Part shown: piece after piece, positions 1 through 30,519 of the stretch
Numbering within the stretch: position 1 is the first letter of the stretch
Layout of the letters: every line of letters begins with the position of its first letter
Assembly (NCBI RefSeq): GCF_031769215.1
Contig: NW_026782462.1
Location: 992,001-1,056,000 of the forward strand
Direction: 5' to 3'
Source of the DNA: Ylistrum balloti
Taxonomy: Eukaryota
Length of the DNA: 64,000 bases
Notes under the pieces: generated by a model
Told to the model about the DNA's origin: nothing
Database searches by the model: none
What the model saw: the letters and a program-made list of their open reading frames with translations, nothing else
Made by a program: the position numbers and the translations under genes

Positions 1-3000
1 ACTTGGCGTATATGATATGATCATCGACTTTAACAGCAAGATGTAAGTCAAAAGGAAACTAAAGATTGAAGTGTACAAAAACATATTAAGATGATGATGT
101 TTTATACAAATTCTTTACTGCATTCTGGGTAATCATTTTAAGGATACAGACTGCCATTACCGGAAGTCACCTGTCACCAATGTTATTGTTGTATTGAGAA
201 AAGCCTACCACTTTTGTCTTTACATCTGTACTCTCCAAGTTTGTGATTAACGCAACCACACGTATGATTTCATGGTGAACGATTGACAAAAGTCTGGGCT
301 GTTATTCACTTGGATAACTTTGCGGTATCATGGAATCAATAACAGGACATTTAAGCCAGTGGTTGGTCGAATATGATAGTGTAAACAAGATACCCCTTCC
401 TTAGTTTGTCAACTTTTCATTTTCATAATTCCCTCGGCTATTATTGAATATGTCGGGAATGCTTTCTCTACTTTTTGGTGTTGAAATTGTGCTACATGAT
501 CATCAGTCGAACATCATTTTATGTGCTTACTTGAAATATGGCCTATAAGTAAGAGGTACTAAATAGTAACGAAGAAAAACAACATATCAAGATATGTTAT
601 TGATATGATCGTGTGCCTTTAACGTGTATTCCTCGTGCTGCCTTTCCATTCCTCGCGCTGCCGTTCTTACTTTCTGTTACGGCATCCAATCTTTGAACTA
701 TGTTCCGATCCCAATGTTTACAGATATTGACTTAATTGCATTAAATGTATGCGATATATCAACAAAAATCTTAATGTATTTGCTGTGAATATTCTCAACG
801 CAAATAGCTTCGCTACAGACAGGACAAGATAACATCATCAATTATGGGTTTTATTTCATGAAAGCATGACAATAAGTTTCTTTCTGTTGACGATGAAACG
901 AACATGTAATTTACACCAGATGACTACACACAGATATTACTCTAAATGTTTCAGGCAAAAACAAAGTGTGTACATATCAAAGTTTGTCCAGGACTATGTG
1001 TTGATTATCGTAAATTCCAGACGAGAACTGTAAGGTAACTGTTACCACCTAGAGATCATATCGTTCCTATCACCACCAACGACCAAATACGACATTCATA
1101 GCTCGTTCACTACAATCAAATTATATTATCTTCATGTGCGTTTATATAATCAGTATAACGACTTATACTTGTACCATAGAATATAACACAAATAACGCAT
1201 TGATTGACATTTTATTTGAACGTTGACCATAAAGCCATCATCAATTGATTCTTTGTGTTATGGACATGTAAAGACTAACAGCGGATTGGGATATGTGTTA
1301 TCAAACTCATCTGTGAAATACAGCCCAGAGCGCGTCACATTAAGTAAGAAAATGATACCACCCATTAGGCCCAGTTGATGGTTCCGGTTTAGCACTGCCT
1401 TTATTGGGTCTGATAATTGATACACAACTCATCATCAATATATTATTGGCATAATTTTAGAAACTAAGAACAAATCAATAAATCAGGCGTTTTTGATTAG
1501 TGCGGAGCTATTACCGACTTTAGCAAAGGCAATTCACGACATCTCATACATCGGGTGTGTGTCCTGTACTTTTACATAGAAAGCCTTTCGGAAGAAAAGT
1601 CGTTAAAACATACATAGAAACATTCACAACTTTTCCAATATCATTGTGACATTTACACTAGATAATCTTCCGATTTAAAAACGAACGATTTAAAATTCTC
1701 TTCACACTTGTATGTGACAATGTCCTATATACATTGCTTTGGAACTTCCATCAGCGCCACGGAGTATGCAAAATATATCTCATTAAATACGAGAAGGAAC
1801 TCACAAATGTGGATAGTGAAACTATAGCCCACAAGCCCATTAGGAAACCGATCATATACTTTATCTAAACTTTTCTTACCAGATCTAGCTGAACATAAAA
1901 TAATAGTTCGTATGGATGATATTTTCATGGATAAAAAGCCTCGTGTACAATGGAAATCGGGGAACTTCAGTTTAAAACCGGGTATGACATATCGTTATAG
2001 GTGTTGGAGTAAATATTGGTACGAAAAGTCACGACAGAAAGAGTTCTTTCTCATAACTACCACCAATTCATCTGATATTTAGTGATTGTTACCAGTATCC
2101 CCTTCTGATTTTGACTTTACGTACATTGTATAATCCTTGGAATAACAAGTGTTGAGCAAGAATATACCACTTTATGATATCGTAAGAGAGTTGCTCCTGA
2201 ACCAATGAAAGTGACAGAAATCCTATAGAATTAGTTCCGGAGATGTAAGTTGTCACAATATTGGCCTATGCTTTGACATTTTATCACATCAAATGATATT
2301 TAGGGCCAAGACACCTGACCACAAAAACAATTTGTGGCCCAATGGCTCATACTTCGTGGAAGGATATCTTATTATATTTCCTAACGTTAGGCTAGCGAAA
2401 ACATATTTCTGGTCACTTTTGTACGCATAGGCGGTTTTCTCGGAAATGTTACCTGTCATTATATACAATCCGAAAGTTTGCAGGAAATGTGGACGAATTA
2501 TAGGATATTATACACGAGGGCCGTCAGGTAGTACGGGTTGTTTCCCTTTATGCTGTATCTGACGGACAGCATGGCATTCACGACAAAAAAAAAAAATATT
2601 GTAATTTTGTTCAACATTGCATATTCTGTTAGAACATCTACGTGTCATATGTATATATATATATAATACTAGCTCTGTCCTGAATCACCATATGTAACTA
2701 TAGGAAAGAGTTATTTTGATAACCACATACCATTCAAACATGGATCGGCCTGCGGACAGAAGCAACATACTTCTTCTCAAGGACGAAAACTCAGCTGAAG
2801 GCTTAAAGTAAGGCAGCGTCAATCGATAAATTAGGGGACACAATTCTGACATTAAAAAAAAAAGACAAAGGTAATGTCCTGTTATCGCCGCTAAGGATCA
2901 TGCAATAGGGTTTTCAATACCCTTCTTACAGAGTAGCAGTCAAATAGGATATTCAGCGACATTAAATGAAATTCGTTATAAGACATGTTCTTATATCAAA

Positions 3001-3944
3001 AGTTCAATAGTTAATGAAAAATGAGTAAACTTTTAGAGATCAAATAGTTTAAATCATAACCATGGCTTTTGAAAAGAATGTTAACCAAACTTAACATTTC
3101 AGCGACATCAAGAAGGTATCTTTTTATGTTAACCCTTTCCGTGGATCTCAGATGGAATAGGATCTTACGGGAGTGTCGACTTCTCATGAAATTTATGAAA
3201 CAAGCAAGACTTTGTTATCTTAACGAGCGCCTGGCATGATAAAATGAAAAAAACAAACAAACAAACAAAACAAACAAACTAAAAAAAAAAGGTTTTGTGC
3301 CCATATACATGAATTCCATTGATTAATTGACTCACCTGTTTTTAATTATAAATTAGCAGTTAAATTCGCATTTCTTCTGTATAATGTTGCTTTTCTGTGT
3401 AGGGATTCGTGAAATGGTTTAATAGACTAGCATATAAGTTTGTTTATTTACTTATCTGTTTGTTTGTTTAGCACTATAACGTCACACCGAGTACAACTCC
3501 GTGACAGTAGCAGTGTACAAAACTCCAGCCAGTCACAGCCCTTTTGTGTTATTTGTCTGTTTAAACCATACAATTTATGCAGGGTATGTTGAGCGTTGGA
3601 AACAGACTAGCTACGTGATGATGTAGTATACCTGCTGTCACGTTGTGTGTGATGTTAGTGTGAACGAACGCTGGAGACTTTAAGTTAACCTTAATGAATA
3701 ATATTGAGAAAGTCACTGCAACTAAGAGTGACATAAGCAACATTCAACGCTTGTCTGTAGAAATAAATTATATGTACGAAGAAACAATATGACCTTACCC
3801 AGCAAATAACTCATTCTTGCGTTACCAATTTGATCATTTATTAATTGAAAGTCAACAGTACTGTTTATAAAAATTCTTGAGTTCTTCAGTTTATTCAGCG
3901 GGGAGTGGGGAGTAATTGGTATGCATTAAAGAGAGGGAAAGCCA

Positions 3945-4262
3945 CGGACGACGTACTCACGGGTCGATACATTTGTTTTCGTGCTGAAGATAACCTTCTA
4001 ACAAATCCAATTTTCTATTGCAATGAAAATTATTTGTTAAATCGACATATGGAAGCCTACAAAGCGCTTCTGGATTGCATCATAAAACGTTATGATGGTA
4101 GCAGGGTTGTACGTCTGTTTTAAAATGAACCTGAAATGCCGAAAGGCCGTTTGAAGTCCCAAAAGTAATTTCACAGTCTAGAGTCCATCTGGATACGGCA
4201 GAAGGTGTCATTGAATTATAGTCTAAAATATAGTTGCTGGCAGCCGAATGTAATAATCGCAC
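3945..4262 (-). pseudogene. Possible decayed CUB-domain exon(s)
   Basis: Minus strand reads LDCEITFGTSNG..FQVHFKTDVQPC, then in a shifted frame YDA..KRFVG and KVIFST..VS..RGF. The spacing resembles CUB motifs; stops and frameshifts are present. Confidence 0.25.
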
Positions 4263-4489
4263 CTGATCTCATACCACAGTCGTGTCTATGATCGCTAGAC
4301 AAAACAACCTTATTAACATTTCAAACCTGCATGACATTAAAAAAAAACATTACAAATGATACTTTTCATGCAAAACTTGAAATTCTGCTTTTGCACAGAA
4401 ATTGGATGATATAGCGGTTACATCTGTAAGATGACAATACATAGCAGTCACCAACAAAATAACACAAAACAAAAAAAGGATCTCGGTAC

Positions 4490-6345
4490 AACACGATGTA
4501 TCGGATAGAGCAGGAGATACGCAAGTATCTGCAGCGTATTGTAAAACAGATAAAGTAGGAGAGAAGTAAATCTCGACAGGTCACTGTAAAACAGAAAAAG
4601 CAGGAGAGAAGCAAATCTCGGCAGCGTACTGTAACACAGATAAAGCAGGAGAGAAGTAAATATCGGCAGCGTACTGTAACACAGATAAAGCAGGAGAGAA
4701 GCAAATCTCGGCAGCGTACTGTAACACAGATAAAGCAGGAGAGAAGCAAATCTCGGCAGCATACTGTAACACAGATAAAGCAGGAGAGAAGCAAATCTCG
4801 GCAGCGTATTGTAAAACAGATAAAGCAGGAGAGAAGCAAATCTCGGCAGCGTACTGTAACACAGATAAAGCAGGAGAGAAGTAAATCTCGGCAGCGTACT
4901 GTAACACAGACAAAGCAGGAGAGAAGCAAATCTCGGCAGCGTACTGTAACACAGATAAAGCCGGAGAGAAGCAAATCTCGGCAGCATACTGTAACACAGA
5001 TAAAGCAGGAGAGAAGCAAATCTCGGCAGCGTATTGTAACACAGATAAAGCAGGAGAGAAGCAAATCTCGGCAGCGTATTGTAAAACAGATAAAGCAGGA
5101 GAGAAGCAAATCTCGGCAGCGTACTGTAACACAGATAAAGCAGGAGAGAAGTAAATCTCGGCAGCGTACTGTAACACAGATAAAGCAGGAGAGAAGCAAA
5201 TCTCGGCAGCATACTGTAACACAGATAAAGCAGGAGAGAAGCAAATCTCGGCAGCGTATTGTAACACAGATAAAGCAGGAGAGAAGCAAATCTCGACAGC
5301 GTATTGTAACACAGATAAAGTAGGAGAGAAGTAAATCTCGGCAGCGTACTATGTAACACAGATAAAGCAGGAGAGAAGTAAATCTCGGCAGCGTACTGTA
5401 ACACAGATAAAGCAGGAGAGAAGTAAATCTCGACAGGTCACTGTAACACAGATAAAGTAGGAGAGAAGCAAATCTCGGCAGCGTACTGTAACACAGATAA
5501 AGCAGGAGAGAAGCAAATCTCGGCAGCGTACTGTAACACAGATAAAGCAGGAGAGAAGCAAATCTCGGCAGCGTACTGTAACACAGATAAAGCAGGAGAG
5601 AAGTAAATCTCGACAGGTCACTGTAACACAGATAAAGCAGGAGAGAAGTAAATCTCGACAGCGTATTGTAACACAGATAAAGCAGGAGAGAAGTAAATCT
5701 CGGCAGCGTATTGTAACACAGATAAAGCAGGAGAGAAGTAAATCTCGGCAGCGTATTGTAACACAGATAAAGCAGGAGAGAAGTAAATCTCGGCAGCGTA
5801 CTGTAACACAGATAAAGCAGGAGAGAAGTAAATCTCGACAGCGTATTGTAACACAGATAAAGCAGGAGAGAAGCAAATCTCGGCAGCGTACTGTAACATA
5901 AATAAAGCAGGAGAGAAGTAAATCTCGGCAGCGTACTGTAACACAGATAAAGCAGGAGAGAAGTAAATCTCGGCAGCGTACTGTAACACAGATAAAGCAG
6001 GAGAGAAGTAAATCTCGGCAGCGTACTGTAACACAGATAAAGCAGGAGAGAAGTAAATCTCGGCAGCGTACTGTAACACAGATAAAGCAGGAGAGAAGTA
6101 AATCTCGACAGCATCCAATGCAACAAATGAAGTTTGACAGAAATCATTATCTGCAGCATACAGGGTTATGACAACAAAGAGGAGAAAGTAATTCTGGTAG
6201 CATACATCGTTATAGATACAAAGTGGAGAAGGTAATTTTGGTAGCATACATCGTTATAGATACAAAGTGGAGAAGGTAATTCTGGTAGCATACAATGATA
6301 TGAATACAAAGGAGAGATTGAAATATCGGCAGCGTACTATGTAAC
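4490..6345. repeat. 45-bp minisatellite (GTAACACAGATAAAGCAGGAGAGAAGYAAATCTCGGCAGCGTACT), about 35 core copies plus diverged flanks
   Basis: Directly visible tandem array. It explains the 175-597 aa minus-strand ORFs at 4366-6247. Confidence 0.97.
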
Positions 6346-7109
6346 AGACGTAAAAAGACGAAATAAAACAACTGTGATGAGGGCTAATCTGATAACAAAA
6401 GTAAACCTTCCCCTAGTAATCTTAGCCATTTCTTTCTTCTCGTCTCTTTTTTTCAGAACTCCGCAATTCAAAGGGTACATCAGATGACGTCATATACTCG
6501 AGATAGAAATGACGCACAGACGGATGGGGTAATAAGGCAGGAGGGTTTCCGGAAGTGTTTCCATGGTATTGCAGAATGACTAAGATAATCTTGTCATATC
6601 AGAACTGTTTCTGTTGTATAATAAGAACGTACAGAAACAGTTAAGTTTCCTTTCTATCGCTAGAAGGTTTTATACATTTACGGGTTTATATAAAGAAAGG
6701 AACGAATGTTTAAGATATAATCGGAATAGATAGCAGTCACCGGAGGTACATGTATAATTTTTTTTATCTAAAACTGATCCAATATAAACGAAAAAACAAG
6801 AATAAAAAACCAAGCTAGTCGTCCTATCCTACAATGTACACGTATTATATACTTCATGTAACTGATTTGTCTAAAATGTCGACGTGTTGATATGGCGTAT
6901 ATATTATCAAATATACATATGTCAAAGAAACCTGATAAAGTGCAGTGATGTCGACAGACCTCACTTAGTTGTGATTTGATAGCGTATACAGTTCTCGCAG
7001 TTTCTGTACGTTCTCTAAAATCTGTCTATTCATATTTGAATTGCAATTTAAAAAATTCTAAATAATTTCCCCATGGTAAGTGTAATAAAGAAATCAAGAT
7101 ATCAGAGTG

Positions 7110-8010
7110 ATGTTGATACAAGACTGTAGCTATTGCCTATATCTGACCTAAGTTTGGTCTGACGACAGTAATATAGATACAAGCCTGTAGCTATTGTCTA
7201 TATCAGACCTAAGTTTGGTCTGACCAGTAATATATACAAGTTTGCTATTGTCTGACCTAACAGTAATGTAGATACAAGCCTGTAGCTATTGTCTATATCT
7301 GACCTAAGTTTGGTCTGACGACAATAATGTAGATACAAGCCTGTAGCTATTGTCTACATCTGACCTATGTTTGGTCTGACGACAGTAATGTAGATACAAG
7401 CCTGTAGCTATTGTCTATATCTGACCTAAGTTTGGTCTGACGACAATAATGTAGATACAAGTCTGTAGCTATTGAGGACAATAATGTAGATACAATCTAG
7501 ACCTAAGTTTGGTCTGACGACAGTAATGTAGATACAAGCCTGTAGCTATTGTCTATATCAGACCTAAGTTTGGTATGACGACAGTAATGTAGATACAAGC
7601 CTGTAGCTATTGTCTATATCTGACCTAAGTTTGGTCTGACGACAATAATGTAGATACAAGTCTGTAGCTATTGTCTATATCTGACCTAAGTTTGGTCTGA
7701 CGACAGTAATGTAGATACAAGCCTGTACCTATTGTCTATATCTGACCTAAGTTTGGTCTGACGACAATAATGTAGATACAAGCCTGTAGCTATTGTCTAC
7801 ATCTGACCTATGTTTGGTCTGACGACAGTAATGTAGATACAAGCCTGTAGCTATTGTCTACATCTGACCTTAGTATGGTCTGACGACAGTTATGTAGATA
7901 CAAGCATGTAACTATTGTCTACATCTGACCTATGTTTGGTCTGACGACAGTAACGTAGATACAAGCCTGTAGCTATTGTCTACATCTTACCTAAGTATGG
8001 TCTGACGAGA
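7110..8010. repeat. 61-bp minisatellite (GTAGATACAAGCCTGTAGCTATTGTCTATATCTGACCTAAGTTTGGTCTGACGACAGTAAT), about 14 copies
   Basis: Unit starts at 7268 and 7329 (61-bp period); some copies are truncated. Confidence 0.96.
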
Positions 8011-8672
8011 ATAATTTTGATACATGTAGCACGTTTATAACGACAAAACCACGTCCCTGTGCCCCTTACCACATATCAAACTCTGTCAATCCGACACTTA
8101 TCTTCTCTTAATGGCAGAGAGCTGATCTCAAATGTAGAGATTGACGTCAGTAAATATGTAATGGTGTCGCTTTATGTAGCAATAGGACAGATATTGACTA
8201 TTTTAAGACGAGCTTGTGACGCCTCGTGACAGGATGGTATTGTATGATATCGCCAGACGTTTGATAAAAGGATGTTGTCTTATAACAGTGATGATGATGT
8301 GTTCAGGTATGCACTGAAAAAGAATTCTCACTGGAAACAATAGGAGTAACATAACATGTAAATATAAACACCCATTAAAAGTCAAATTGAACACGTAACT
8401 TGTATTAAAATACATATAGCAATGTCGTTACGAGGAAAGGTAAATAGATAAATTCAATGACGCGTGACCTGGTGACCAGCCTAAACTATGTAAAAGTTTA
8501 AAATATGATATGATCCGATAGAATTTTCCCCGACATTTCGATTCGGTTAAGAAACTTCCTGGCAATAAAATTGAAGAGGGCCATAGCCCAAAAAGGCTGC
8601 AATCACCCTATTGTTTTATCACAGGCTGGAAATCATTATTTGGTAACTAAGATTATGGCGTAGCTAGACGTT

Positions 8673-25220: not shown

Positions 25221-27101
25221 TCAAATCAAAGAGGTAGGACTATTGAATTCCTGCTAGAGGGGATCTCTGTCTGCGGTGTAAGTGATGCTGATACGTGTAA
25301 CCCCTCTGTGGAAATAAATGCCGAGACGAGACGAACAGATGCAATCGCAGATGTGTAAAGCGTGACATCAAATCTTTGATTAAAATGTCCACTGATCTTT
25401 GATGGCGCCGTGGTTTTTTTCATTATTTTAATAGAAACGTACATGTAATTCGGTATACCGTCAGGGATTGCGTCATAACAGCACGCGCTCCGTCTGGTTC
25501 CCTGTGAATGCCAAGATACACGTAGAAGTGATAATAGACTATGGATTCAGATATATTACACCTTCTTATTTTGAACACGAAGCATCGAGACAATTTACTG
25601 AGAGATTTGGTAGGTACATTGTACATGTTTGAACTACATTGTTCTGTAGTATCCCTAGGTTTATGTAGCGGTAATTTGAATACAGGAAGGAGACCGGATA
25701 GTATGGTAGGGGTTTAGTGCCACAACAAAGCAGGGTGCCGTATATACATACTTTTCTGTACATACGAACTACGTACATTTATGTACGTGCTTCACGTGCA
25801 TAACTAAATTCACAGCGCTTTAAAACTTCCTTGTCAATTGTTTTACAAGATTGATTTTAAAAGACATGCTTGTTGTAGTTGCGGACCTCCGTTTTAATGT
25901 TCCAACGTGTTCACGACACACCCCTATATCTTATTGTTCACTACTATATTTAGCTCACGCGAATATTGGGTACATGTGTACATGTAGACATTTGATTGCA
26001 GTTTTATTCTTTCATTGCGACGACGATCTGTGCGTTTGGCCAGGTGTTGAAAACAATATTCAATACTGCCTGGCATTTGAAACAGATATAGATGTATTCT
26101 CAGAATACGACATTACAATGTAATTATTCTACAAGCAATAGCTGTGTATTCTTGGTGGTGGAAACCACATTGTGAATTCTAATCTTGCTTGAAACATCTG
26201 TTTTTATTGCATAAAAAGTCATTTTAAAAAAATAAATGTTCTGAAGGAGTAGAATCGCGTGCGTCATCATAATCCCATCCCTTTTAAGTATGTTACTTTA
26301 CGACTCAAAAGGACAAATGAAATAGGTATAGCGAAATAACAGAATGTAAAAAAAATAGTCAACAAACATTTCTTAATTGTACACGAAAATAGACATAAGA
26401 TGATGGCGAGGCGATAAAATACTCATTGTCAAGACTGTCCAATTTTATAACTTTTTTTTATCATTGTGTATTTCTCTTCTGTGTGAGGTTGTGTATTTGA
26501 TACAATAACGTTCATGAAAAACTGTTGTTGTTTGCTTTTTTTAAATGAGTCCAGTTCAAGATATCGACAGATGGTTAGGGTCACGTGATAGCGCATTAGA
26601 GAGCTTTATAAGGAACTGTCAGAACTTAGACAAGCTTCCATCCTGTTTCACTGGCTAAGCTGGTTTTCTTGTGCTTCCGCTTCAGTACTGAGCGTCAAAC
26701 AATAAATCTTATTGAATTCAGTAATTCAAAGCTTACGGACAGAGATGGTATTACATTATAATGATTTTGTCATTAAATTAGTAATTATTTCATAGCGACA
26801 ATAAAATGTGCATTTAGTACATCTGTACTTGGGATGTACTCGAGCTTAGTACAACAGATCAGTAGAAGCTGACAGCCGAAGCTTAAAGTGTACCCTGAGA
26901 GTAATTTTATATTTAGATATAATGTTAAGAATGCCGTAAAATAATAATAATGAAAACCCCGTCAAAATCCGTCGCCCCAGTGTCGAGTTATTAAAGCTCA
27001 AAGTTGTCGATTTTCACCTGTCCGCCCAGACCTAATCAGCCGAATCGTCATTTCCGCGGAATCGAGGCTCTTCTACTCGTGACGTCATAAGTTCAACAGA
27101 A

Positions 27102-27370
27102 ATGGCAGTCAACATGACTGACAGTGACAAGGACACCGCAACTGAGAGCGATTTGAGCATGAGTTTTGAGGAGTCTGATTATGGTGTGAATGATATGTCT
27201 GAAGACGGAATCCAGCCCTACCGATTTGAACTGGAATTACAAGACGATGTATCCAGTGAGGAGGAAAATGACCCTTCGAAAAGTGACGATCGCTTCACTG
27301 GGTCTCACCAGTAGTCGTGAAAGTAGTCGAACAGTGAATCGTCGTTTCAAAGAAACAAAATAAAATTGGG
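27102..27370 (+). pseudogene. KolX-like (P2X7 cytoplasmic-ballast/Nanor-like) accessory gene, N-terminal remnant
   Basis: ORF 27102-27314 MAVNMTDSD...GIQPYRFELELQDDVSSEEE: acidic N-terminus with the I/VQPYxFE motif typical of KolX/P2X7-ballast-like proteins. It ends in a premature stop; a frameshifted ..AAT TGG followed by GT lies near 27370. Located inside the Kolobok TIRs. Confidence 0.6.
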
Positions 27371-28171
27371 TGTGGTTTTGGACTAATTTTAAGTCTCGAT
27401 CAACAATTTCTGACGTCGGGAAATCGCGTTTGTGCAAGACTATGCATACATTCACGAGGTGTCGGAAATTTCTTACCGAAGAAGTTTCGTCCGAGGGGAA
27501 TTTTTCTTTCCAGGGAATTTTCGTAGCACTATGGATATATATAGATAGGGTGTCAACAACCAATTATAACACCCTCCGCTGTGTTAATAATAATAATTTG
27601 ATGTTTTAGAAGTTTAAACAATTATTTGACTGGTTTTTACCCTAGCACTGGTACGCGTCTGTTGTTAGCCGACAGGCCTGTCGCCTCACAGGGTCACAAT
27701 TGTTTTTTCCAGCCACAGAGGTGCTAATTACCTAACCTGGCACAGGTGTGATTATGAGTTTAGATGACATCTCTACACTGTGAACTGTGTTTTCAAATCA
27801 AGATAGGTGATCTTATTGTTATTTTTACGATCGCAAAATTAATAACTTAACAACATCGTCTGCTGGAAGATCTAAAAACCAAATACACCTTATACAAACA
27901 ACATACACACATAACCTATTCTATAAATTCTAATAATTCTATTCTATACTATATAATAGTAGTATGAAAATTCTCGTGGTGAAAATTCCCGTGACCCATT
28001 CACGACTAGGCCTTCTCCGAGTATTAGGCGTTCACGATTACGAAGGAATGATATTCCTATGACCGCCCAAGTCATAGGCTAGCCTATCAATTTAAAATGT
28101 TTAGTTGTAGAATTAATAACAAAATATCAACCTAACAAATATACTTTTATTTAAACAACAATCAGTTTTAT

Positions 28172-28255
28172 TTATCGACGTCATGCATCGACACCCCATC
28201 CGTGTTAGTGTTAGGACAACCATACACACCGCTTCCCTCCTCGATAGGAAACCAT
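28172..28255 (-). pseudogene. THAP zinc-finger N-terminus of Kolobok transposase (frameshifted remnant)
   Basis: Minus strand from ATG at 28255 reads MVSYRGGKRCV, then after a 1-nt frameshift GCPNTNTDGVSMH. This matches the THAP start pattern M..xCxxxGCxNxxxxGVSxHxFP. The rest of the transposase is absent. Confidence 0.72.
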
Positions 28256-30519
28256 TTTAGCGGATTTAAGCGCTAACTCACCGACCCCTCGTTCACTACC
28301 TTAGATATTGCGAAGATGTGAAGTACTTTCACGTAAATAAACAAAGAAATTACCACGGAAAATCCCAAAATAGATCACAATCACATGTAGCACAGTAAAG
28401 ACAATATGGCTGCATCAACAAAAGCGTTGAACTTATGACGTCACGGGTTTGGGTGCCCGAAAACGAGGTCAACGCCTCTCAGTCAAAGGTGTGTTTTTTT
28501 AGAAAAGTCGCAATTTCTCAGTAACGGAACATTCCATGGCATTCGCGTTTTCGGCATAGTGTATTTTATGTGCAGAACTATTTTTCAAGGTCAACATAGC
28601 TGACCTCTCAGGGTACACTTTAATGTAGATGTACATTGTATATGGTTGTAGAGCAGTTTCCAACTGTGCTGTTGTTTACGTACATCTAAGTCTATAAAAT
28701 AAGAAAATGTGATAGGACAAATAATTATACCGTGGCTGAGTTTCCCTTTCTCAGACTAAATGTAATCATGTATCGTCTACTATATTGAACTCGGAGAGAA
28801 TCACATTTAGATCCGCCATTTGTTGGCGTGATTTGAGAATACGGGTTTCCTTATACATGTCTCGGGGCTCTTCACGGCTGGGTGCTTCCACTGCTGTGTC
28901 CAGATAAGTGAAACATGGCCTACAGAATTACGTAATATCGTCCCTATGTATCAGTGTATCACAGAAACTCAGAAATACCTACAAACAGTTTGTATAAGTA
29001 ATCATTGCCATTTTATCAGTTGTGTTTTATCCGATGTAGATGATTTTTCACGTTCTCTTGTCATCGTTAAAGCGAAATCTCGCTATTGCGATGGATGAAA
29101 ATGACACAGTTCATTTCTGCTGATTTCTGTTTTTTTTATCTGTTGACAAATATTTGAATTATTTACAATAGATTAAAAGCAAGCTTGATTTGGTATATGC
29201 AATGCATAAAATGAACATGTATAATACACATATGTAACTTGTAATATTGTACACCCCATTGATCTGTGAATTTAACCAGAACGGTGATAATTTGTTCTCT
29301 TCAGCCCTTTTAACAACAAGACAGTATCTACACGAGTCGGTCCCTTGACAGCCCTATAGAGAGAAGACAACCTACCACATCCCATTTTACATGTGGCACG
29401 GAAGGACGATGCAATAACTGTCGTCTGCCGAGTGTGCTATGGAGATATAGACTCCTGCGTTTTGTGGGTTTCCAATCGGAAGGGAGCGAGCCGAGGATCT
29501 GACGTTATATGTCCTTGGATTGAAGTTAAACGTCAATGGCTTCCCATTTCAAGTCTGCTCAGCTTTGAGATAAACATTGTACCCAACATATTTCCTCCTG
29601 AGTCACATCCTGTCGATACTTTTCCCCTTCAGATAGGTAGTTGTATAGATGAAACTTGCTTACGATAGCATACTTATTTTTCTTAGAATGCTAAACGATT
29701 AGTTGCGAAATTTTGATTTGGTAAAGGCAAGTTATTCTCCAGAGGCGCCATCTACCATCGGTCGTGTGATCTATTAGGCTATAGCGATACACGCCTGGCG
29801 GAGCTACAGTCGTTTACGGTAGTGTATAGCGGTAGGTGGGCGCCATTTTAACAAGATCCTGTTTTTACATGACAGTTATTTAGCGTAAACTCTCCGACAT
29901 CAAATCACAGATTAATTTGTTAGCTTATGTTATGTCCATTGCATATAAATGATCGTTTTATCCTGGTAGGGCGGTTCGGTTTTTGACGCCAGTAGAGTGA
30001 CCTTGGGAGAATGAAGGTCAGTCAATATGACACCGCAACACAATGACCAGCGTTTGAGATCGTAAATTCTAATATTTCCAATGTATATAAATTACTATTT
30101 TATCCTTAATGCCGTTTAAAGATGCTCGCTGAATGAGTTTTTCTTCAGTCCCGGTATGGAGTCTGTTGTTGTATAGATCTTTACGTTCAAATAGTCTCTG
30201 GTCCTCCATTAAACGTGACACCGAACGTTAAGGGAATACGGTCGCATTTTGTTACAGAAACACTGTTTTTGTCACCAAACGTAAAGATCGATAGCAGTAA
30301 CAACATTCTAAGATACACTAACATATCATTTTCGCATACCTGTAAATTTACTTCGGAAAACAAGACATTTCATACACATTATATATAACATTATTAGCAA
30401 CGGTGTTGGAAGTAGTTTCTTTGTGCGTTGTACTACAACAATTTTAAAATGTCGACATCTGAAAGACAAAGTTATAAGAAACGGTTTTGAAAGATGCAGG
30501 TTGATGAAGATTATGTTTT

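Follow-up and report, generated by a model that had tools for sequence, protein, structure and literature searches.

Kolobok transposons create TTAA duplications at their target sites and carry 5'-RR/YY-3' termini, which tell them apart from piggyBac elements; they share the C/DxxH motif with hAT, P and MuDR, and a zinc finger follows this motif (Kojima & Bao 2022, PMC9587614). The Kol0 lineage of Kolobok, whose type element is Kolobok-1_XT (Kapitonov & Jurka; Kojima & Bao 2022, PMC9587614), carries a second protein, KolX, which is similar to the P2X7 ballast. Relatives of KolX are also borne by piggyBac elements, mostly without the Cys-rich N-terminal half (PMC9587614). Here we describe an element from a stretch of 64,000 nucleotides of the Ylistrum balloti genome (assembly GCF_031769215.1, contig NW_026782462.1, positions 992,001 to 1,056,000; hereafter the window). 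An earlier reading of these letters (the sequence-only reading) had proposed a Kolobok transposon here that has lost its middle and retains the starts of a THAP transposase gene and a KolX gene, and the background on Kolobok and KolX that it gave is as stated in Kojima & Bao 2022 (PMC9587614). We are highly confident that positions 26887-28619 of the window hold a non-autonomous copy, with an internal deletion, of a cut-and-paste Kolobok transposon of the Kol0 lineage. The element is a member of a described kind, and what is specific to it is this family in this mollusc.

Termini and target-site duplication

The unit spans 26883-28623 (1,741 bp) and comprises, in order, TTAA, the 15-mer AGTGTACCCTGAGAG, 1,703 bases, the exact reverse complement of the 15-mer and a second TTAA. 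Its boundaries are as follows (window coordinates, strand):

26883-26886, no strand: left TTAA target-site duplication
26887-26901, plus strand: left 15-bp terminal inverted repeat (TIR), AGTGTACCCTGAGAG, beginning 5'-AG, 100% complementary to the right arm
28605-28619, minus strand: right 15-bp TIR, ending CT-3', the exact reverse complement of AGTGTACCCTGAGAG
28620-28623, no strand: right TTAA target-site duplication

Taken together with the TTAA, each arm is 19 nt long and the two are 100% complementary, so the perfect 15-bp TIRs and bilateral TTAA of the sequence-only reading are present exactly as it described them. The termini of the element are 5'-AG...CT-3' and obey the 5'-RR/YY-3' rule, which bears out its further claim of Kolobok-style duplications and ends. 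Evidence for the limits of the mobile unit comes from contigs assembled from four public sequencing runs of two studies, in which the presence of a variant can be seen while its absence cannot. About 10 or more different, unaligned flanks abut the element exactly at 26882/26883 and 28623/28624, and the exact abutment of so many flanks in independent read contigs marks the ends of the element. The TTAA duplication is shared by the wider family, being found on both sides in 26 of 29 copies whose outer flanks are, with the exceptions given below, unrelated.

Copy number, age and dispersal of the short family

The 19-mer formed by TTAA and the TIR occurs 189 times in the genome and its reversed control not at all, which is far above chance and supplies the other copies with these TIRs that the sequence-only reading calls for. 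Genome counts of 24-mers from the element ends, allowing up to two mismatches, gave 135 matches for the left end and 154 for the right (control 0 in each case). The window copy therefore belongs to a young family of about 135-155 elements. With the whole 1,741 bp as query, at least 40 near-full-length matches were present among 231 first-look candidates in the same genome. For comparison, 29 copies were excised at their TIRs; after removal of duplicates 24 were independent, i.e. 23 at unrelated sites together with one representative of a tandem array. The outer flanks of the 29 are unrelated to one another, barring one near-identical pair and five members of the tandem array. Members of this short family measure 1,733-1,777 bp between TIR ends (consensus 1,769 bp) and diverge from the consensus by 0.4-1.5%, with a mean pairwise difference of 1.9% among the 24 independent copies. 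Both TIRs are perfect in 20 of the 29, the window copy included. The latter differs from the consensus by 0.87% and shows deletions of 25 bp and 9 bp that are private to it.

The tandem array (G000:C448:18000-37774 and G000:C1175:1-40000) repeats a single insertion plus about 1.9 kb of flank with a period of about 3.64 kb. Its units, which are 99.5% alike and occur in both orientations, number at least four on C448 and five on C1175; all are filled and their TTAA flanks are identical. Elsewhere, long pairs of TIRs on C105, C146 and C988 had been candidates for autonomous elements. They were rejected as such, being short-family copies with nested insertions: the copies at C105:396964-405612, C146:579598-583028 and C988:116010-124721 have each been split by later insertions of other elements, of about 1.7 to 7 kb.

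A long relative is collinear with both ends

An element of 7,210 bp in inverted orientation was found among the TIR pairs (G000:C211:941047-948256, equivalent to L032:501-7710; hereafter the C211 element). The short-family consensus aligns with it in three blocks:

consensus 1-606 with C211 element 5-613: 93.6% identity
consensus 1148-1315 with C211 element 605-770: 89.3% identity
consensus 1333-1769 with C211 element 6765-7206: 94.8% identity

The window copy corresponds to positions 1-770 joined to 6765-7210 of the long element, and the intervening 5,994 bp (771-6764) are absent. Both ends are thus collinear with the C211 element and the coding middle is gone, which is the structure of a non-autonomous deletion derivative. 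The sequence-only reading had pictured just such an internal-deletion derivative, with two gene starts facing each other and the middle missing, and the roughly 6 kb lost between the matching ends can now be read directly from the long relative.

Protein evidence in the long relative was collected exon by exon, with no joined multi-exon model. In the C211 element a multi-exon transposase gene runs inward from the right end and converges on a three-exon KolX gene running inward from the left. The transposase begins KMASYR*GKRCAAYGCPNTSTDGVSMHAFPLNRPDVCKQW and includes an N-terminal C2CH THAP zinc finger (PF05485, E = 2.2e-13, profile positions 1-61, L032:886-1134). The DDE core exon (L032:3227-3700) matches PF20700, 'Mutator-like transposase' (E = 2e-6); the exon after it gives a MULE match (E = 1e-3) and contains DVWH, a D-x-x-H motif. 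Downstream of DVWH, a His/Cys cluster of the H-x2-H-x8-C-x-H type was seen, by eye only, in a later exon (open reading frame (ORF) at L032:4480-4851), and another exon includes SEVEGYHSVINQFAPK. Library homologues of the core exon number 2,796 (E ≤ 0.001), and the longest of these include proteins with both THAP and PF20700, and tblastn with the homologues returns five to seven collinear exon blocks in the long element, the number varying with the homologue used. The THAP-DDE transposase postulated for the parent is accordingly found in the long relative. The DDE region is seen there only, having been deleted from the window copy, which keeps the C-x4-C part of the THAP finger in frameshifted form.

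Of the three exons of KolX, exon 1 is acidic (GIQPYRFEPE...DRLGNIDW), exon 2 contains CQCNRC...ECVCCEE...CITDHPGF...VCLD and exon 3 reads AYRQLARWCWGFLG...PSCAVSLIRRTFP...YTGF. Exon 3 scores above the Pfam threshold for P2RX7_C both in the C211 element (26.9 bits, 5.3e-6) and in a second long relative, C525 (34.5 bits, 2.5e-8), and its only PDB matches are to P2X7 (four sequences, residues 544-593, best E = 0.012). Exon 2 alone had no match in Pfam; the nearest Atlas clusters to it carry P2RX7_C (score 0.86, taken as a lead only). A PDB match between exon 2 (L032:6370-6588, minus strand) and the sperm microtubule inner protein SPMIP5/C10orf82 was judged not significant, being inflated by repeats: the whole-sequence E of 1.4e-4 derives from the two internal repeats of that protein, in a match centred on VLRT..YRQYH, with a per-repeat E of 3.5. 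All three KolX exons are found again, at identities of 39-67%, in three further Kolobok families of this genome, likewise convergent with a homologous transposase, and in these the exon 1 motif takes the form GI(Q/R)PY(R/Q)FEPE...DRLGxxxW. The accessory gene likened earlier to KolX and the P2X7 ballast is therefore present in the long relatives, as expected of the Kol0 lineage, and the window copy retains exon 1 of it. The sequence-only reading had suggested searching the genome for further copies and running THAP and P2X7 profiles on the longer ones; this recovered the family and matches to both THAP and P2RX7_C, and the C211 element carries THAP, DDE and KolX together.

These genes also bear on the alternative that the window copy is a non-autonomous element of piggyBac type. 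The TTAA duplications are in keeping with this, since TTAA is the target of piggyBac as well, and a KolX-like protein is known from a few families of piggyBac. We nonetheless regard it as exceedingly improbable: the AG...CT termini fit the RR/YY rule (PMC9587614), the transposase of the long relative combines THAP with a Mutator-like/MULE DDE core and D-x-x-H, no match to the piggyBac transposase family of Pfam (DDE_Tnp_1_7) was seen among the parent exons or their homologues, and the KolX of the long relative keeps its Cys-rich N-terminal half.

Gene remnants and subterminal boxes in the window copy

Between its TIRs the window copy contains the following features (window coordinates, strand):

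27075-27097, plus strand: left subterminal 23-bp box with TGACGTCA, cAMP response element (CRE)-like, 96% complementary to 28426-28448 and ending 5 bp before the KolX ATG
27102-27314, plus strand: KolX exon 1 remnant, a 70-residue acidic ORF with GIQPYRFE, a motif also conserved in the first KolX exon of three further Kolobok families
27458-27996, no strand: nested insert resembling a miniature inverted-repeat transposable element (MITE), in KolX intron 1
28165-28181, no strand: 17-bp filler of unrelated bases at the internal-deletion junction, joining long-element positions 770 and 6765
28182-28255, minus strand: transposase start remnant, ATG at 28255 plus the first ~25 THAP codons (the C-x4-C part), frameshifted and cut at the deletion junction
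28426-28448, minus strand: right subterminal 23-bp CRE-like box, mirror of 27075-27097, with a private G at 28445

The plus-strand acidic ORF with GIQPYRFE (21 Asp and Glu vs 4 Lys and Arg) is as the sequence-only reading had described it. Its reading frame is open in 26 of the 29 copies. In the window copy it ends DDRFTGSHQ* instead of DDRLGNIDW and a splice donor because the private 25-bp deletion, which lies after about 27295, removes the LGNIDW exon end together with the donor. Pfam gave no match to the window ORF alone, exon 1 lying outside the P2RX7_C profile, and its identity is therefore taken from the long relatives.

On the minus strand, the ATG at 28255 opens MVSYRGGKRC and reading resumes GVYGCPNTNTDGVSMH past a 2-bp frameshift (a loss of 2 bp) that is common to the whole short family. 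The same residues begin the THAP match of the C211 element at profile position 1 (E = 2.2e-13), in agreement with the minus-strand THAP start proposed earlier. Another ATG near 28561 (MPKTRMPW...) was considered for this role and rejected, as all it opens is a short upstream ORF within the 5' leader. The window copy encodes no functional protein and supplies cis sequences only (i.e. TIRs and subterminal regions). The frameshift in the THAP stub, the 25-bp private deletion and the nested 539-bp insert were all absent from the sequence-only reading.

The two 23-nt CRE-like boxes, with their TGACGTCA core, sit about 190 bp inside each end. The left box is also present in the short-family consensus and in the C211 element, and a similar twin box lies equally far from the ends in another family, C339 (L045:1311-1336 and 8346-8371), the transposase of which is 53% identical. 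The private G of the window copy at 28445 is an A in every overlying contig in all four runs.

Nested insert and deletion junction

The insert in KolX intron 1 is 539-541 bp long, ends in imperfect TIRs of 16 bp (GGTGTCGGGAATTTTC / GGTCACGGGAATTTTC) and sits between the two copies of a 9-bp direct duplication, CATTCACGA (27449-27457 and 27997-28005). The combination of a 541-bp block, a 9-bp duplication and 16-bp inverted ends identifies it as a nested MITE-like insertion that was carried along in amplification: it sits at about position 609 of the long element, is carried by all copies of the 1.77-kb family, and is absent from the long elements on C211 and C525 and from a shorter derivative on C179. 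The insert, whose inverted ends begin GG, is probably a member of an independent repeat family. At least one partial relative of it, 80% identical, lies outside any Kolobok copy, at L048:4380-4501.

The C179 derivative (~1.2 kb) has nearly the same deletion as the short family and no MITE, and on these grounds looks like a precursor state. A further derivative, of 643 bp on C36, has different breakpoints. The differing breakpoints of C36, C179 and the short family indicate that several independent deletion forms exist.

Weighing the assignment and present mobility

A number of observations count against the reading of the window copy as a deletion derivative of a Kol0-lineage Kolobok, or limit it. 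The superfamily was assigned from hallmarks and Pfam matches, not from a phylogeny that includes curated transposases of Kolobok. At their ends the long copies differ from the short family by about 5-6%, so that neither of them is its direct parent. The C211 transposase is interrupted by a stop at codon 6, ahead of the zinc-binding cysteines, and KolX exon 3 of the same element has an 11-bp frameshifting deletion; C525 ends at long-element position 6286, without the THAP end and right TIR, and C71 is fragmented. These are the three loci at least 79% identical to the core exon among 60 candidates, all of which were scored, and no intact same-family transposase was found among them in the assembly. 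Finally, the window locus showed neither an empty site nor an excision footprint, and no contig from the four runs skips the element, although contigs cannot prove an empty allele absent.

This last point also answers a check proposed in the sequence-only reading, which had looked to other individuals for empty TTAA sites: all four runs carry the insertion, on flanks with different single-nucleotide polymorphisms (SNPs), and the flank contigs reach 24-28 bases into the TIRs. No empty allele or haplotig of this site was found in the assembly, where its left flank is single-copy, and the C448/C1175 tandem array offers no empty paralogous site, every unit being filled.

The same reading had held that mobilisation of the unmutated TIRs in trans was still possible. 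In cis this claim stands, the TIRs being perfect and the family very young; in trans, the assembly offers no intact same-family transposase to act on them. Judged from its sequence, mobilisation of the window copy in trans today is plausible. Set against this is the possibility that the family no longer moves and is what a recent burst has left as a fixed fossil, with the window copy common to all individuals. The insertion in four of four runs from two studies on flanks with different SNPs, the lack of an empty-site joint in those runs and the failure to find an intact same-family transposase in the assembly all point in this direction, while the contigs speak to presence only and to four samples, and perfect TIR pairs in 20 of 29 copies at 0.4-1.5% divergence are compatible with very recent activity. 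On balance we hold immobility to be a serious possibility that falls a little short of an even chance.

A further explanation is that the short family is still mobile and is moved by the transposase of a different Kolobok family (i.e. cross-mobilisation), its own parent lineage being extinct in the assembly. The short family lies about 1% from its consensus, yet every one of the three transposase loci of its own family is broken or truncated, which could be accounted for in this way, and the C339 family (53% amino acid identity) shares the first 8-9 terminal bases (AGTGTACC) in addition to the twin CRE-like box. However, the other Kolobok families of this genome (35-61% amino acid identity) have different TIRs; none of those compared bears AGTGTACCCTGAGAG within three mismatches, and they were rejected on this ground as carriers of the short-family TIR. 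Binding by THAP domains is specific to sequence, and between families the subterminal regions cannot be aligned by BLAST. An intact same-family copy may, moreover, just be missing from this individual or assembly. We therefore consider cross-mobilisation unlikely. The C339 copy itself has 16-bp TIRs (AGTGTACCTAGATTAC; L045:1123-1153 and 8558-8588), and its immediate flanks are not TTAA on either side.

Discussion

We propose the following course of events, the order of which we infer together with the repair mechanism and the mobilisation in trans. The full element, of about 7.2 kb, carries two genes with introns that converge on each other, and a subterminal CRE-like box precedes each of them; the right one encodes a THAP and DDE transposase and the left one KolX, a free-standing zinc protein resembling the P2X7 'ballast'. 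From an ancestor of this kind the stretch of about 6 kb that reaches from KolX intron 1 to THAP codon ~25 would have been lost, and the 17-bp filler that stayed behind is as expected of abortive gap repair or end joining. The 541-bp MITE would subsequently have entered the intron remnant, and the resulting 1.77-kb derivative would have been amplified to about 150 copies by a transposase acting in trans, each insertion duplicating TTAA. Deletion down to the ends and gene starts is the ordinary way in which such elements decay and spread.

In each of the short copies both CRE-like promoter boxes are kept, pointing at one another over a distance of about 1.3 kb in which no gene ends, so that the family could constitute convergent transcription units. 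We think it improbable that the ~150 short copies act in this capacity as dispersed, self-made repressor loci rather than as inert passengers; were this the case, small-RNA silencing might be fed, or the Kolobok family damped in another way, by RNAs that overlap in sense and antisense or by the acidic peptide of KolX exon 1. The value of the present findings lies mainly in annotation, in that they put on record a non-autonomous Kolobok family of a mollusc that is young and high in copy number, along with the broken autonomous elements related to it, and confirm the acidic 'GIQPYRFEP' ORF as a reliable flag for KolX exon 1. With its perfect ends and ~150 copies, the family could also serve as a natural substrate for the study of Kolobok transposition and of the role of KolX. 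Knowledge of Kolobok and of the origin of the P2X7 ballast is unchanged, both having been published already (PMC9587614).

In comparison with known systems, the family agrees with Kol0 Kolobok elements in its TTAA duplications, RR/YY termini, D-x-x-H DDE transposase and KolX, all of which are found in the C211 and C525 long relatives. The window copy differs from them in being a deletion derivative, with KolX exon 1, about 25 THAP codons and a nested MITE. It resembles classical internal-deletion derivatives (e.g. Ds from Ac and non-autonomous P elements) in that the ends are kept, the coding middle is lost and the junction carries filler, and also in its demography, with ~150 copies against 2-3 parents and several deletion forms coexisting. 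In contrast to non-autonomous P and Ds, both gene stubs are non-functional here, the THAP stub being frameshifted and KolX reduced to exon 1, and the window copy therefore contains no candidate for a KP-like repressor. The TTAA target site and short TIRs are shared with piggyBac MITEs, whereas the element ends differ in type from those of piggyBac and the parent encodes a transposase with THAP and a Mutator-like DDE core. Like the solo long terminal direct repeats (LTDRs) of KolobokP (Kojima & Bao 2022), the copies are abundant, short, non-autonomous Kolobok units in a bivalve with short TIRs. Unlike these, the present family has neither LTDRs nor a His-Me nuclease gene, and its parent carries KolX, the marker of Kol0.

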